From Rebecca billardiae RCC1528 (lineage: Eukaryota > Protista > Haptophyta): 64,000 nt of DNA. The stretch covers positions 868,001-932,000 of the forward strand of contig OZ251234.1 in NCBI GenBank assembly GCA_965240325.2. Direction: 5' to 3'. Each line of letters starts with the position of its first letter. Within the stretch, counting starts at the first letter, position 1. Made by a program: the position numbers and the translations under genes. A model generated the notes under the pieces. The model ran no database searches, was not told the origin of the DNA, and saw only the letters and a program-made list of their open reading frames with translations. Shown piece after piece: positions 347 to 8,901 of the stretch.

Positions 347-3033
347 ATGGGCGACCGCAGCGCCGTCCCGCTGGACCCGCTTCCCGATGCGCTCCCGCTC
401 GCCGACACCTTCGTCCCGCCGCCGCCGATCAGCGTGCCCACGAGCGCTCACGCGGAGCGCGCCGAGAAGCGCGCCGTGCTCTTCACCGCCGCCGAGGATG
501 GCTCGGGCGCGCCCGCGTTGAAGCGGCTTCGGCCGCTGCAGCTGGACACGGAGCTCGCGCTGATCGAGTCAGGCGCCACCGTCGACTCGCCCTTCGCGCC
601 GACCACGCCGGCGACGACCAAGGCGCGGCGTCGCACGCCGCTGCACGAGGCCATCGTGGCGGCGTCCGAGTCGGCGGTCGCCGCGGCGCTCGAGGTGGCG
701 GCGAGCGTGCCCTCCGTGCTTGACGCGAAGGACGAGCACGGGCACACGCCGCTGATCACCGCCGCCAGCCTCGAGGCCTCCGACGGCCTCCCGGCGCGGC
801 TCGTGCGCATGCTGCTCGAGCGCGGCGCGAGCGCCGACACATCCGACGAGAGCGGGTACACGGCGATGCACTGGGCGGCGGCGCTGGGCCACGTGGGCGT
901 GGTGCAGCTGCTCGCCGAGTCGAGCGCGCCGCTCGAGGCGCGCTCGAACGCGGGCGAGACGCCGCTCCACCGCGCCAGCCGGCTCGGCCACGCCGAGTGC
1001 GTGCGCGCCCTCGTGCGCGCGGGCGCGGACGTGCGCGCCCGCTCGCGGCGTTCCGAGGGCGCCGTGGAGGTGGCGGGGTGCTTCGAGGGGCGCGTGAACC
1101 CGAAGCTGCGGCAGAGCACGCTGCGCGCGCTCGTGCAGTGCGCGCCCGTGCTGCGCACCCTCGTCCTCTCGCACCCGGACTGCCAGCTGCACGCCACGCG
1201 GCCCGGCCACCAGGAGGCGCCGGGGAGAATCGGCGCGATCATGTCCAAGCTCACCTCCGCGCGCATCTTCGACAAGAGCGAGCTGAGCTGCCAGGCGGAG
1301 TTCGAGCCGGCGACGCGCGAGGCGCTGCTGCGCGTGCACTCCGCCGGCTACGTCGACTCGGTCTTCACCCTCGCCGCCTCGCTCGAGCGGCACCGGCTGA
1401 GCGCGCCGGTCGCCTTCACCCCGCACGTGCAGCACGCGCACGCGGCCGGCGCGTCGCCCAACGGCGAGCTGGCGGGCGGCGGCGGCGGCGGCGGCGGGCG
1501 GCGCGGGGGCGAGCAGGCCGCGCGCGGCTTCGACGTCCAGGCCTACGCCGCCGAGCTCGCCAAGCTCCACGCGCGGGAGGCCGAGGCACTCGCCGCCGCC
1601 GAGCCGCCGCCGCCGGCCCGCGCCGGTGACAAGCCGTCTGCAAGCGCTGGGCGGCGTACCGCCTTGCACCCGGCCCTGGCCGACGGGCCGACGGCGAACG
1701 CGGGCAGGCGCGCCGCGGCGAACGCAGCGCGCAACGCCGAGCGGCAGGGCGGGCAGACCGCGCAGACCGGCACGCCGCCCCCGCCCGGCGGCGAGGCGGG
1801 CAGCTCGGGCGCGGCCAAGGCTGCGGGCGACATGCTGGCCCCCAGCGCCCCGGCCGCGCGCGCGGCGAGCGGCGCGCCGGGCACGGAGGACAGGCGCTCG
1901 GAGTGCGGCGGCGCCGGCGCGGCTGCCGCGCGAACCGACGCCAAGGACGAGCCGCCCGCGATGCCGCAGCTCATGTCGCAGGTCTCCTCCGACACGTCCT
2001 TCTCCAAAGGCGCGCGCCGCGACGCGCCGCGCGGCGCCGCGCTCGCTCCGCGCGACGCCGCGCTTGGCCCGTGTTCACGCGCGCCCGCGCTCGCCGCGCG
2101 CGCGCCCACCGACACGCCCGCGGTGCGCCGCGCCGGGTCCGTCGCGCAGGCTCTCTCAAGGCCGCGCTCCGCGCGGCCGGCAGCGCGATCGCCGCGGTGG
2201 ACGCGGTCGTCGGCGGCCAGTACCGAAACGCATTCTGCGCGGTGCGTCCGCCCGGCCACCACGCCGGCCGGGACGGGCTAATCGAGGGCGCGTCCTCGTG
2301 CGGGTTCTGTATCTTCAACTCGGTGGCGGTGGCGGCGCTGCACGCGCTGAGCACGCACGCGAGCGTGCGCCGCGTCGCGATCGTCGACCTCGACGTGCAC
2401 CACGGCAACGGCACGCAGGACGTGCTCTCGCGCCTGCCCGCCGAGCAGTGGCCGCGCGGCGCGGACGGCTCCCGCAAGGACGTCTTCTTTGTCTCGATGC
2501 ATCTGTACGACACTAACTCCTCGCTCGACGTGGGCGAGTATCAGTTCTACCCGGGTGCGTGCGCGCGCGGGGTGGGGGGGTGGAGGAGCCGTCGCGGCGG
2601 CGCCGCCGCACGCCCGCGCGCCTGACCGCCTGCGCCGCCTGGCCGCGCGTGCGCTCGCCCTTGCCGCCCCGCCGCCCGCCCGCCCGCCCGCCCACCCGCC
2701 AACGCGTGACGCAGGCTCGGGCGCCGGCGAGCACGAGGACCTGTTCAGTAACTGCCTGAACATCGCGCTGCAGCCCCTCTGGGCTTCGACCAAGCCGACC
2801 GCCGCGGCGCTTGCCGAGCAGCAGGAGAGGGCGGCAGCGGCGCAGGCGGCGCAGGCGGCGCAGGCAGCGGACGGCGCAGCCGCCGCACCGCCGAGCGGGC
2901 AGCAGGCGGGCGCGGCGCCGAGCGGGCGCGACACCCCCGTCTCAGGCGGCTCGGGCGCTGCCTCCGCCGTGGCTCCCTCCGCCCCCGGCGCTGCAGCCGG
3001 CGCGGGAGCCGCTGGAGCTGGCGGCGGCGGAGC

Positions 3034-3067
<34 letters not shown>

Positions 3068-3650
3068 ACCGGAGGGAACAGCGCTCACGGCCACGGACGC
3101 GGGCGGCGCGCGCCTGCGCTCGAGCCGCTGCCAAATGCGTGCGGCCGCGTGCAGTACAGGCAAGCCTTCAGCCAGCGGCTGCTGCCCGCCCTGCGCGCCG
3201 CCGCGCCCGACCTGATCCTGATCTCGGCGGGCTTCGACGCGGGCAAGCGCGACGTGGGCAATTCGCGACTCTTCTCCGATGACAGGTGCGCGCAGCTCGC
3301 GCGCGGCGCGCGCGGCGCGCAAGCCGTGCGCGCGCTCGTGCGCGCACGGCGGATGCTGATACGAGGAGCACACCCGCGCGCACTCTCGGCGCAGGTACTG
3401 CCAAGGCGCCGACCTCGAGGGCCACGACTTCTCGTGGCTGACCGAGCAGCTGCTCGGCGTGGCCAACATGGTGTGCGACGGGCGCGTCGTCTCAGTCCTC
3501 GAGGGCGGCTACGGCCACTACGAGCTGAGCGTCGGCAGGACGATGGGCATTGAGCCGTCGAGCCTCGCCGAGAACGTCGCCGCGCACGTGCGAGCACTGG
3601 TGGGCAGGCCGCTCTCGAGCGCGCCGACGAAGACGCACTCGCGCTCCTGA
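347..3650 (+). CDS. Ankyrin-repeat + class II-type histone deacetylase; exons 347-2009, 2150-2554, 2715-3285, 3395-3650
   Basis: N-terminal ankyrin motifs (TPLHEA, GHTPLITA, GYTAMHWA, GETPLHRA). HDAC motifs HQEAPGRI, LLRVHSAGYV, DTSFS/AALRAAG, RPPGHHA, DLDVHHGNGT, SAGFDA, VLEGGY. Three introns (GC-AG 2010-2149; GT-AG 2555-2714 and 3286-3394) join the frames. Confidence 0.9.
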
Positions 3651-3953
3651 CTGGCAAGTCGGCGTGCGGCGGATCGATACGATCGCCGCGGGATGTTCGG
3701 ACTCGGACTTCAGCTGGGCTCCGCTTCCGTGGCCGAGTGCCCGCGGGACGCGGTCCGTGGCTCCGACTGCCCGCTCCTAAGGGTGCGGCTCCGACGATGC
3801 CGAGTCTGGCCTGACTGGTCCCGGGGTCCTCCCGCTACTCTGAATACGACGACTCCATATATATATCAGATCACCCCGCGCGCGGCGCGCGCTATCATAT
3901 CACAGATTCATATTCAATGACATAGCAGTGACATAACACTCATTCGGAGTGAC

Positions 3954-6606
3954 CACAGTGCGCTACCCGGCACCGAAAGTTGAATTGGCAGAATCGGCCG
4001 ATTCCGCGATCAGGGACGTTTTCGCGGAGGCCGGCCGCCATCGCTGGCGCAGCCATCCGCGCGCGAACACGCGCGCGCAGCGACGCCAGCCGCATGGCGT
4101 GCGCCAAGACGGGGGGCGGCTGAGTTCTGCATCGCCTACGCTCGTTCGGGCTCGCGGGTTATGCCTCCCATCGCGGCCGCCTCCGTCCGCCTTTGACCAG
4201 AGTGCGCGTGCAGGTGCGCCAGCAGTCTGCGACATCGCCTCCCGCGCGCCGCGCCACACCGCGGCTGACAGGGGGGTCTAGGAGGGAATCGCAGAAAGTT
4301 ACGTGGCTGAAATTGTTCGGTGTACACGCATCATCAAACCTAGCACAGCTGCGTTTCGCCGTTGACGAGCTGCACCCCCCCCTCAATTCGCGGGCTCTCC
4401 GCGCTCGCTTCGCGAGCAGGAACATCTGAGATCCGCACGCGAACATGCGCGCGCAGAGACGCCAGCCGCATGGCGTGCGCCAAGACGGGGGGCGGCTGAG
4501 TTCTGCATCACCTACGCTCGTTCGGGCTCGCGGGTCATGCCTCCCATCGCGGCCGCCTCCGTCCGCCTCTGACCGGAGTGCGCGTGCCGGGTGCTCGGCA
4601 GCCTGCGCGCGCACCTTGCGCGCGCCGCGCCACACGGCGGCTGACAGCGGGGTCTAGGAGGGCATCGCAGAAAGTTACACGGCTGAAAGTGTTCGCTGTA
4701 CGCGCATGACCAAGTGCATCACAGCTGCGTTCCACCGTTCACGAGCTGCACCCCCTTCCATTCGCAGGCGCGCCGCGGCCGCGCTCGCGCAGGCGCATGG
4801 GATCCACGTGTTGGCTCGATCATCGGGATCAAGCGGGCTGCGCAGGCAGTGGGCTGGCGTACGAGCTCACTACACGCGCAGTGTCAGAATACGCTGCATC
4901 AGATGTGCCCCGTCGGCTGTGCTGCTGAGCATACGGCACACGACGGGCACTCGAGCAGTGTGGCTGGCGATGAGCCCGAGCATCCCAGCTGGCGTGCGAG
5001 TGGCTTACTGGGCGCAGCTGATGCACGAGCACCCTGCGTTGCACACCGAAGGTGCCAGAAGCACGCGTTCTTGCCATCCAGTCGTATCGTCCGGCCCCCA
5101 TGCGCTCAAGGCGGGGGAGGAGATCTGCACGCGTACGCGCGCGCTGGAGATTCCCGAGGCCGCGCATCTGGGCGCTCGGGTTGCCTCCACAGGGGCACCT
5201 GAGCTTGACTCGAGGGCTGAGTGGAGCAGGCGACGAAACACGCACGACGAGTGGCCGGCGTGATTGTCTGGGGTCTCCTCGTGGCGCGCTTGCACGTTTT
5301 CGGCGCATCACCACTGTGCTGACTTCGCGGCGGCGCCCCGACCGCGCCCCGAGTGACCGTGTCATCGGCTGACCCGCTGACTGCACCGTACGTCCGTACC
5401 AGGCGCAGCTGAGACTCGCGCAGAGTAGCGCGGCGCCTATGGCTATAGCCCGGTCGTAGCTTGCGCGTATAGGAGTAGCAGTTGTCGTCATGCGACCTGC
5501 TCGCCTGCTGCGCTAATAAAATTTGATGACTGGCCGCCCGCGGACCAAACCTACTGTGCGCACGCAGCAGGATTCCACTTCCAGCGACGCGGGCAGCGTG
5601 CCCGCGCGTCGACCCGACGGCCAGCAGTCAGCTCGAGTCGCGTCGGCGGACGGCTGGCTGGCGGATGAGTCGGCAGGCTTGGGGAGCCCGCGGGCGCGGC
5701 ACGCCACGCTGATTGCATGCTGCTGTAGTTGCGCATCGCCTCTTCGTAGACGCGCTGCCTCACTCTCAGCTGAGCTCGGGCCGCCGGGTGCGACGACGGC
5801 TGGCGGGAGCCGCTGACAGTGACGTCATGACGACCGACCGCGAACTCCGACCTGGCTGACGGCAGCGCGAGCAGCGCAGCACGGCGCGGCGCGATGCGAT
5901 CTGCGGCGCGGCGTGGCGGTGGGCCCGCGTGACACGCTGCCAGCGCCACTGGCGTGCGAGACCCCGCCCCGTCTCCGCAGCGCCGCGCTCACATGTGACC
6001 ACGACCTGCACAACACGGGCCGTGGTCAGAAAGCCGTCGCGCGCGCGTTCATTTACGCGGCACCTTGGTGCTGAGCGCCAGCCGAGAGGTAGTGGCGACG
6101 ACGACATCCACTCCAGGTCGATGTGCACCTGCGTCTGTGCCCGGGTGCCGCTGGGATGCGATTGAGGATGAGATTGCGGCAGCATGCCCTGATATGAGCA
6201 GCGGTCAGTTTGGAGAGCGTGAGTCGTGCCAGCACGCGAGAGCAGACGTGCACGTTTCGAGCAGCCGAGCTGGACCATGAAAGTCAGCAATCCAGCGCGC
6301 ATGCCGCGCACCCGAAAGAGCCGACCATCTCCGCATGCTCAGAGCAGCCGGCGGCGCGCTCGCAGAGTCGCTTCGGAGTCGCTTTGCGGCCGTCTCGGCG
6401 CGTGTCATGTGGAGCTGCTCTCGAGGCGAAGGAGGAGGAAGGCGTTGATCAGCGCCGCTGAAGACTAGGACTAGGCTCTCTCGCGAGGTCCGCCGCGCGG
6501 TCTACGCCGCCGATCACGGCCTCTTTGAGGACGGTCGGCCAGCGCGCGCGTCGGCAGCCATCGTGACGCCTCTCATTCAACTTTCGGCCCGTGTTAGCGC
6601 ACTGTG
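3954..6606. mobile_element. Non-autonomous DNA transposon with 32-bp bipartite TIRs beginning CACAGTG (CMC/Transib-like termini), 3-bp TSD GAC
   Basis: Left end CACAGTGCGCTA-cccggca-CCGAAAGTTGAAT (3954-3985). Right end reverse complement CACAGTGCGCTA-acacggg-CCGAAAGTTGAAT (6575-6606). GAC flanks both ends. No recognisable transposase inside. Confidence 0.8.
4055..4800 (+). repeat. Diverged tandem duplication, period 376 bp, inside the TIR element
   Basis: 4055-4430 vs 4431-~4800 share long near-identical blocks, e.g. GACGCCAGCCGCATGGCGTGCGCCAAGACGGGGGGCGGCTGAGTTCTGCATC. Confidence 0.9.
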
Positions 6607-7228
6607 GACAGCATACTCAGAGTGAACAGAGTCGTCGCGTCACTACTGCTGTTACGGATATACTTATAGATCGAGTTAGTAGAGGCGCCTGGCCGGCTGG
6701 CCGCGCCGCCGCCTGGCAACTATGCTGTGACTGGGTCTGGCACTGGCACTCACTCAGTGACAGTGGCAGCGCGCCTGCCACGACGATGCCTCACAGTCAC
6801 AGTCAGTCCGCCACTGACAGATAGTAGCTATAATGCCTATATCAGCACGCGTTATTGGCGGTTCGGCTCGGGTGCCGAGCGCCGCCGACGAGCGGGAAGA
6901 GCGCCAGGGGAGGGTGCGCTGGCGCGGGCGGGGTGTTAGGAGGCGCACGCTGAGGCGGCCCACTGAGGGAGTCTATCGTGTTATAAATCGTCGACGAATT
7001 TCATCATTAATTCGTAACTGACGAGCGATCGATATGCCGATATATCATCGTCGACTGTCGAGACTCGAGTCATAATAATCAGCGCATCATCAGAATCGTC
7101 ATCGTCTGCTGATCAGACTGATGAGCGCTGCTCATGAGCCGGATGAGATCGACTCGCTCAGCAGGTTCCGCATGATCCGGAGTAGCTACTTACTTACTTC
7201 AACTTGTTAATTAATAGTACGCGGACTC

Positions 7229-8530
7229 CTAGAGGGCACCGTCCGCCCGGGAGCTGGCGTCGCCCTTGAGCTTGGTGTGGCGGCCGCGGCTGTCCACGTG
7301 GTAGCGTTCTATGACGTACGGGTCGGAGCAGTGAACCACGGTGTAGTTGTTGTGATCCTTGGCAGCGCCGCTGTCCTTGCTGAAGACGAACGCATCTGAG
7401 AGCCACTGCTGCTGGCTGAGCGACGTCGCTTGAGCGAACCAGCGTGACTCCCAGAGGCCCGTCATCGGCGAGACCATGAGGAACAGGTTGACGAGGAGCC
7501 AGAGCGCCAGGCTGACGAGCGCGAACACGTACTCGAAGGCGAAGACTTGGTCGTCGTCGTCGGACGTCCCCAGCCGGAGCGCGTCGGGCACGGCGCTCTT
7601 GCCGTCCTCCGTACGCACGTCGGCGTGCACAAAGATGAGCACGCTCATGATGAGCAGGATGAGCAGGCCGCCGTTCATCACCTGGTCGAGCACCGTCGCG
7701 TAGCTCTTCTTCGGCACCTCCGAGACCAGCGTGAAGCGGAAGGCGACCACCGTGAGCAGCAGCGTGAGCGAGATGGAGCAGCGGTCCGCCACCTCGTCGC
7801 GCGGCACCAGCACGACGTTGGCTGTCATCAGCACGATCAGCATGTGCGGGAGGATGAGGTTGATGCGGTACCAGAACGAGTCGCGCCGCGCCTCGATCGT
7901 CATGAAGCACCGGTGGTACGCCCGCCCGGACGTCGCGACGAGGCCCAGCGCCTTCGGGTCCGGGAGCACCATCATCGGCCGCTCCTCGTTCAGGGTGCTC
8001 CACCGCGTCGCGCGGCTGCGCACGACGCTGGACCGGCCGGGGTAGGGCACGAAGATCACCTCGGTGGTGTCCTGGTACGTGCCGAGGTGCACGGCGAGCA
8101 GCTGCTTGTCGAACGGGAAGTGCTGCAGCTCCAGCGCCTCGGAGAGCTCGACGCGCATCTTGGAGAAGCAGTGCATCTGGCCGCGCGACTGGTCGATGCA
8201 AATCGTGATCTCGCTGACCACCTCGCTCCGATCGGTCACGTTCCGAATGTAGAGCTTGGGCCGCCAGCAGTTCGTGACGAGCGCGTCGTACCGCTCCGTC
8301 CCCTTCTTCGGCGCGCCAGCGGCTCGGTACTGGTCCACCCAGCCCTTTGCGAGCCACGTGTACTTGATGTCGAGCTCGACGTAGAACGACTCCATCGCGT
8401 CGTTCACCGAGTTGAGCGTCATCTCGAAGCTGATGCCGACCTCGCCCGGCGCCAACTGCCCGCGCGATTGCGCAGGGGGAACACTCAACGTTCTCGCCGA
8501 GCTCGCGTGGCCAACCTTCACGACGGACAT
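7229..8530 (-). CDS. Pentameric ligand-gated ion channel subunit (Cys-less/Pro-loop type)
   Basis: WRPKLYIRN, LQHFPFDKQ Pro-loop, pre-M1 RR..FWYRINLILP, four TM helices with M2 DRCSISLTLLLTVVAF and M2-M3 loop VPKKSYATVLD. ATG at 8530. Confidence 0.88.
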   Translation of the reverse strand: MSVVKVGHASSARTLSVPPAQSRGQLAPGEVGISFEMTLNSVNDAMESFYVELDIKYTWLAKGWVDQYRAAGAPKKGTERYDALVTNCWRPKLYIRNVTDRSEVVSEITICIDQSRGQMHCFSKMRVELSEALELQHFPFDKQLLAVHLGTYQDTTEVIFVPYPGRSSVVRSRATRWSTLNEERPMMVLPDPKALGLVATSGRAYHRCFMTIEARRDSFWYRINLILPHMLIVLMTANVVLVPRDEVADRCSISLTLLLTVVAFRFTLVSEVPKKSYATVLDQVMNGGLLILLIMSVLIFVHADVRTEDGKSAVPDALRLGTSDDDDQVFAFEYVFALVSLALWLLVNLFLMVSPMTGLWESRWFAQATSLSQQQWLSDAFVFSKDSGAAKDHNNYTVVHCSDPYVIERYHVDSRGRHTKLKGDASSRADGAL

Positions 8531-8901
8531 CGCACCGGGGCCGAGGCAGCGGGAGAGCGGCGGGAGAGCGGCGGCTCGCTTTTCTCGCGGTCGCCCGGCC
8601 AACTTGAAACTCTCAACTCCACGACGAAGACGACGGCCCTTGGAAGATCAAGACGACGACTGTTTTGGCGGGCGTCAATATCTCAAGTAAACTGGAAAAC
8701 TCAAAACTGTACGCACGCCGGACGCGTTTAGAAAGCACGAAACGCATCGCGGATGCGCGGTGGGCAGCCGGACTCTTCATGAGCACCAGTGCTGTGCTCT
8801 GGTGAGCTGCGCCCGGTGACTCGTACAGTACAAGCATACGGAGCTTGACGACGAGATGCCGTCCACCCACTGTCACGCTTGACGTCCGCCGCGGTACCTA
8901 C

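Follow-up and report, generated by a model that had tools for sequence, protein, structure and literature searches.

The question raised by this locus is whether a 2.65-kb element that carries the exact V(D)J heptamer CACAGTG at both ends derives from the Transib/RAG-like transposons or belongs to another group of cut-and-paste elements. The element lies in the very GC-rich genome of the haptophyte alga Rebecca billardiae RCC1528, in a window of 64,000 nucleotides (C17:868001-932000 of a 72-Mb assembly in 41 contigs), and positions are given in window coordinates unless a contig is named. A preliminary description of the window had presented it as a transposon relic with RSS-like ends, derived from a CMC/Transib-related family that might have an autonomous partner elsewhere in the genome. 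We examined its termini, the copies of its family and their target-site duplications (TSDs), its coding capacity, and the assembly for longer elements with the same ends.

Organization of the element and its termini

Two convergent genes flank the element, both facing it with their 3' ends (Table 1). Its terminal inverted repeats (TIRs), which the repeat finder identified as the longest inverted pair of the region, are 32 nt long and consist of 12 identical nucleotides (CACAGTGCGCTA), 7 differing ones and 13 further identical ones (CCGAAAGTTGAAT). The heptamer is found at 3954-3960, with its complement CACTGTG at 6600-6606, and the inner block starts 12 nt past the heptamer at both ends. The first five nucleotides of this supposed 12-nt spacer (CGCTA) are identical at both ends too. 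The arms of the window copy agree at 27 of 32 positions, with all five mismatches falling within the 7-nt stretch, and the trinucleotide GAC is duplicated at the flanks; in all these respects, the preliminary description was accurate. Of these mismatches, the A>C at element nt 13 is unique to the window copy, and the family consensus has 28 of 32 positions in agreement. The window contains two matches to the two-block pattern, whereas 100 shuffles yielded none. The tandem duplication with a period of 376 bp was seen in other copies too, and it is part of the family structure.

Table 1. Features of the element and its surroundings in the window, and ends elsewhere in the assembly in which the two blocks are spaced differently
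Feature	Position	Strand	Description and basis
Non-autonomous transposon copy, whole, 2653 bp	3954..6606	+	subfamily A, youngest group; full-length genome matches and paired copies
Flanking GAC, left	3951..3953	.	apparent 3-bp TSD of the window copy; sequence reading and family comparison
Flanking GAC, right	6607..6609	.	sequence reading and family comparison
Left TIR	3954..3985	+	outer block CACAGTGCGCTA 3954-3965, variable 7 nt 3966-3972, inner block CCGAAAGTTGAAT 3973-3985
Right TIR	6575..6606	-	inner block 6575-6587, variable 7 nt 6588-6594, outer block 6595-6606
Internal tandem duplication	4055..4730	+	two units of ~300 nt, 88% alike, period 376 bp; repeat finder
Hypervariable middle	4953..5673	+	element nt 1000-1720; subfamily comparison
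ORF with histone-deacetylase domain	2489-3553	+	convergent neighbour of the element
ORF for Cys-loop channel	7229-8602	-	convergent neighbour of the element
Ends with 16-nt spacing	C7:482834, C1:1225570		decayed or solo relatives with both blocks
Ends with 17-nt spacing	C1:1225301, C1:1225787		decayed or solo relatives with both blocks
End with 19-nt spacing	C7:1147728 (= L057)		decayed or solo relative with both blocks
End with 27-nt spacing	C18:1460882		decayed or solo relative with both blocks

Across the family, the left variable segment reads AACCG(G/C)CA (or GCCGGCA) at every left end, and the right one, ACACGGG, is invariant in all copies. The difference between the two 7-nt stretches is a family trait and not a peculiarity of the window copy. 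The spacing between heptamer and inner block is 12 nt in all 40 family ends; with 12 nt at both ends, there is therefore no asymmetry of the 12/23 type, which distinguishes V(D)J-type RSS pairs. The inner block is not A-rich and matches the RSS nonamer ACAAAAACC at four of nine positions, the weak match that had already been noticed. What remains of the RSS-like character attributed to these ends is, consequently, the heptamer, since the nonamer match and the 12/23 asymmetry do not follow it. Each end contains the inner-block motif just once, and we saw in the family no subterminal repeat arrays of the kind that is typical for CACTA elements of plants.

The decayed or solo relatives with both blocks have spacings of 16, 17, 19 or 27 nt, and no 12/23 pairing was seen among them. 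Given that the search patterns demanded both blocks, these spacings show only spacer drift in dead copies. Just past the end of locus L063 (C1:1225299-1226072), a stretch of about 800 bp carries four copies of the inner-block motif together with three CACAGTG tips, all on one strand and with spacers of 16-17 nt; the arrangement resembles ends of the left type repeated in tandem.

Copy number, identity and age of the family

The TIR pattern with both blocks and at most three mismatches gave 40 matches in the genome, compared with 0 for the reversed control. A DNA search of the genome with the whole element returned 30 places, the full-length matches reaching 91-100% by the search's own scoring. 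Both ends are intact in 17 copies, with lengths of 2618-2682 bp, and one further full copy (on contig C25) has a 3-bp insertion inside one heptamer, which gives a total of 18 independent full copies across 13 contigs, plus fragments. Identity across the full copies is 93-100%, and several subfamilies can be distinguished: pairwise identity is 97-100% inside group A (12 copies) and 98-100% inside group B (5 copies), compared with 93-94% between the two groups.

The copy nearest to the window element (C5:4064524-4067176) differs from it at 10 sites and is 99.6% identical. Given this identity and the membership in a family of 18 full copies, the element is not the relic that it had been taken for; the family is young and probably still mobile. 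It is a new family in this alga, inside a known broad transposon group. Being young, it could mark differences between strains, and it could also serve to test which of the CAC-ended transposases of the genome moves it.

A seemingly truncated copy at C5:4068290 was rejected as an additional copy and left out of the count, since beyond an N gap the assembly repeats one and the same insertion. At this locus (L043, C5:4066790-4072081), a run of N is followed by a 5'-truncated copy whose right flank is the same as that of the full copy 1.1 kb upstream, and the repeat is probably an assembly duplication across the gap.

Target-site duplications and insertion sites

The genome-wide pairing of TIRs and tabulation of TSDs that the preliminary description had proposed yielded 17 paired copies, and 14 of them are flanked by a perfect 2-bp TSD (the chance of at least 14 in 17 is about 8e-15). 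A 3-bp match was found in one copy only, the GAC of the window copy, and TSDs of 4 or 5 bp in none of the 17. The two remaining copies show no TSD, one of them reading ATA/AGA. The duplicated dinucleotides are varied (TA three times; CT, AA and TT twice each; the rest once). The family norm is, therefore, a TSD of 2 bp, with an occasional 3 bp, and neither the 3-bp TSD of EnSpm and Chapaev3 nor the 5-bp TSD of Transib describes it.

The insertion flanks are AT-rich, with 42% GC within +-10 bp, compared with 69% in the outer flanks a kilobase away. GC content reaches up to 86% in host coding DNA (L065:1-1500) and is about 66% in the transposon (as measured in the window copy) and about 42% at the insertion sites. 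Since coding DNA, transposon and insertion sites differ so widely, the genome is made up of sharply contrasting compositional compartments.

Coding capacity and internal mosaic

The longest ORF of the window copy encodes 220 aa rich in Arg, Ala and Pro, and the longest ORF switches frame and strand between copies. Among the 17 paired copies compared, no ORF of at least 100 aa is intact in all, each being broken in most copies. No significant Pfam match was obtained for 10 ORFs of the element and no Rfam match for the element itself, and the subfamilies are separated by many indels whose lengths are not multiples of 3. Given the lack of a conserved ORF of at least 100 aa and of Pfam or Rfam matches, together with these non-triplet indels, the element is non-autonomous. 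It thus combines dispersed copies, TIRs and TSDs with a lack of conserved coding capacity, as is usual for non-autonomous DNA transposons, and the earlier view of it as a non-autonomous TIR element whose ends are symmetric (12/12) stands.

Groups A and B diverge unevenly along their length. In the outer ~1 kb of each side, they show 0-6 differences per 100 bp (98-99% conserved), whereas between element nt 1000 and 1720, five of the seven 100-bp bins contain 9-27 substitutions per 100 bp, the segment also holding many non-triplet indels. The substitution spectrum of this middle segment is balanced between transitions and transversions, unlike that of the element ends. Judging from this comparison, the element seems more likely to be a mosaic, its middle having been exchanged between older lineages, than to have been under selection over 1 kb of its terminal sequence.

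Search for an autonomous partner

Five TIR patterns were run on the genome: both blocks with at most three mismatches; the outer 15-mer; the heptamer plus the inner block with a gap of 4-34 nt; the outer 10-mer combined with CGAAA; and the outer 11-mer by itself. None of the five revealed a longer element in the assembly, all their matches belonging to the 2.65-kb family or to solo ends, bar one pair 7.5 kb apart (C1:1217831/1225335). This pair was rejected as a chance pairing, and it encloses host genes (a 440-aa ORF without a Pfam match, MFS, CRAL-TRIO and GT90). In the whole-element search, none of the 30 places exceeded 2.7 kb, and none shared the subterminal parts alone with a longer unit. 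The autonomous partner suggested by the preliminary description was, accordingly, not found among elements with these ends or with shared subterminal sequence; four candidate ends (C7:482867, C18:1460882, C5:487146 and C5:1127179) entered this search by their coordinates alone.

Four loci with partial ends (L062, L063, L064 and L065) were rejected as partners because they hold host genes or junk ORFs; across the loci around partial ends, we found host genes (RCC1, HNOB, MFS, CRAL-TRIO and GT90) or low-complexity ORFs. L057 was also rejected as a partner end, being a decayed end interrupted by other repeats. A genome search with the Pfam profiles RAG1 (PF12940) and Transposase_21 (PF02992) gave no match, and the control genomes were silent too. 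The TIR pattern had no match in the metagenome and viral contig collections, and a literature search on haptophyte CMC/Transib elements returned nothing relevant from the library covered. In a partner of this family, CACAGTGCGCTA and CCGAAAGTTGAA(T/G) would be expected at the ends or close to them; were there no such element, the family would probably be either orphaned or cross-mobilised.

Classification and alternative origins

The lineages of the CACTA/Mirage/Chapaev(/Transib) clade (CMCT) have 5'-CA..TG-3' termini and TSDs of 2-5 bp (PMC12730594), and CAC...GTG tips are a hallmark of CMC/Transib elements (PMC4079192; PMC12730594). The family studied here has 5'-CAC...GTG-3' termini together with TSDs within this range (2 bp in 14 of 17 copies, 3 bp in one), and it is this combination of CAC...GTG tips with a 2-bp TSD that places it in the CMCT clade. 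We consider it likely that the window element is a recently mobile, non-coding cut-and-paste transposon from a CMCT family of about 18 copies, outside Transib/RAG, the class being read from the termini and the TSD. The relationship to CMC/Transib proposed earlier is supported for the CMCT group, to which termini and TSD conform, and fails for Transib itself, as no copy has a 5-bp TSD.

By analogy, the family appears closest in its behaviour to Mirage and to the CACTA elements with 2-bp TSDs. CAC..GTG termini occur together with a 2-bp TSD in the CACTA element ENS1_Cis and in the CMC-NA elements (PMC6004678), and Mirage and these CACTA elements (ENS1_Cis, CMC-NA_1/2) resemble the family in termini, TSD and the presence of non-autonomous derivatives in up to tens of copies (PMC6004678; PMC12730594). 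The family differs from them in that it has no sequence similarity to a described family, in its algal host and in that no transposase is linked to it. Variation between 2 and 3 bp inside a single lineage is also known from PlavakaB, a fungal CMCT lineage (PMC12730594), and is comparable to the 14 copies with 2 bp and the one with 3 bp seen here, although Plavaka elements have CATCA..TGATG or TGT..ACA termini, fungal hosts and large autonomous elements. With EnSpm/CACTA proper and Chapaev3, the family has the CAC tips in common, and the lone GAC/GAC of the window copy mimics their 3-bp TSD. The Chapaev TSD is 3-4 bp, that of Chapaev3 being TWA between A and T (PMC4079192), whereas the family norm is 2 bp with varied sequences; GAC is the sole 3-bp match, and no TWA was observed.

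How such an element might move can be outlined. A DDE transposase encoded elsewhere would bind both ends, with the outer block CACAGTGCGCTA as the presumed cleavage site and the inner block CCGAAAGTTGAAT as a putative second transposase contact. After excision by this enzyme, the element would be reinserted by it at a target cut with a stagger of 2 nt, sometimes of 3 nt, as may have occurred in the window copy.

Three other origins were weighed against a CMCT transposon outside Transib/RAG. If the element were a true Transib/RAG-like derivative, its ends would be homologous to V(D)J signals and would be handled by a RAG1/Transib transposase. The exact heptamer at both ends and the start of a second conserved block 12 nt further in would agree with such a descent, as would the two adjacent A residues that the TIR has, at that spacing, at nonamer positions 5-6, positions stressed in PMC1131882. 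The two-part end with a variable stretch in between is likewise shared with Transib and the V(D)J RSS (PMC1131882). The Transib TIR consensus is, however, CACAATG followed by a 23-bp spacer and an A-rich nonamer, and Transib is defined and separated from other superfamilies by its 5-bp TSD (PMC1131882); in the family, the heptamer is the only part of this arrangement that fits, the second block being CCGAAAGTTGAAT rather than an A-rich nonamer. RSS pairs combine 12 and 23, whereas the family ends are 12/12 and the decayed relatives, at 16-27 nt, offer no such pairing. Neither would a likeness to RAG1 be specific, as it is general to CMCT transposases, which resemble RAG1 in profile comparisons (PMC12730594). 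It is the family-level TSD of 2 bp that sets the family apart from Transib, and we regard this descent as extremely improbable. Tips beginning with CAC are found throughout the CACTA-Mirage-Chapaev-Transib clade, so that a V(D)J heptamer at the end of a transposon, even an exact one, is no evidence of RAG/Transib ancestry.

A TSD of 2 bp is also made outside the CMCT clade, in particular by ISL2EU within the PIF/Harbinger-ISL2EU-Spy group (PHIS) (PMC12730594), and the element might be a non-autonomous member of such a superfamily with CAC tips that arose by coincidence. Harbinger relatives make TSDs of 0, 2 or 3 bp (PMC12730594), a range that would accommodate the family, and the absence of a transposase linked to it leaves room for this assignment, which is nonetheless improbable given that CAC...GTG tips are the CMC/Transib hallmark and that several other CAC-ended families are present in the same genome. 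We consider it very improbable that the 2.65-kb element is itself autonomous or functional through a small spliced protein or an RNA unrecognised by the searches. The near-constant length of all copies would suit this possibility, as would the conservation of the terminal ~1 kb per side between subfamilies when the middle is not conserved, and two short ORFs (83 and 98 aa) are open in 15-16 of 17 copies. These ORFs, however, lie within nearly invariant DNA, so that their openness is uninformative, and their translations are rich in Arg, Ala and Pro, as random GC-rich sequence would give. The failure of Pfam and Rfam to recognise the element and the breakage of the longer ORFs in most copies also speak against a functional product, and an element of 2.65 kb offers little room for a DDE transposase gene that has introns.

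A CMCT transposon outside Transib/RAG is, then, the reading that we retain, and the result extends a known group by one algal family without opening a new question. A rather doubtful extension starts from the two-block end, with its CAC tip, its freely changing variable stretch and an inner block that a second repeat family of 38 copies also uses. Such an end might be what an algal RAG1-fold transposase with 2-bp cuts binds, and the architecture of heptamer, spacer and second box would then occur outside Transib. If this were true, the RSS-like layout of the ends would predate the Transib/RAG branch and be common to the CMCT clade.

Other repeats with related ends or in the vicinity of family copies

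A second repeat family reads CACAAAAAGTGAACAGCAATCGGGTCCGAAAGTTGAAG and was found at 38 places (e.g. C1:3145400-3145437 and C17:854071-854108), compared with 0/1 for the control; in this family, the inner TIR block of the element stands 18 nt after a CACAAAA word. A broken copy, interrupted by another repeat, is present at L054:1-62. The presence of the inner block in this second family fits a shared protein-binding motif, putatively a transposase-binding one. A near-identical inner-block motif, CCGAAAGTTGAAG, occurs about 50 times elsewhere, often paired 212 bp apart on one strand. Dozens of genome sites read CACCGTGCGCTGCCC (e.g. C1:1004364 and C10:774602), a sequence that probably terminates a further abundant family of CAC-ended elements, with the heptamer CACCGTG and the same GCGCT continuation.

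Several copies or fragments of the family adjoin other repeats. At L061:2001-5569 (C30:1294534 onward), a 24-nt fragment of the left TIR directly borders a 3.5-kb element (34-nt TIRs, CACAGCAACGATTTC..., 97% complementary), whose interior consists mostly of GC-rich low-complexity repeats and which has no visible 2-bp duplication. A possible outer inverted pair, CACCACAACGATTCC... / CACCACGACGATTGC... (20/24; L033:94-4223), brackets the copy C16:57899-60560. This copy may sit inside a further CAC-ended element, or the outer pair may be due to chance. A repeat family of ~1.0 kb with at least 30 copies and 85-96% identity is represented at L054:63-1082 and in L042, the diverged copy in L042 being located 15 bp from the copy C27:344581-347198 of the family studied here. 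L057 contains two further dispersed repeats, one of ~200 bp (L057:2139-2335; at least 17 places, 93-97%) and one of ~670 bp (L057:2476-3146; at least 20 places, 83-98%).
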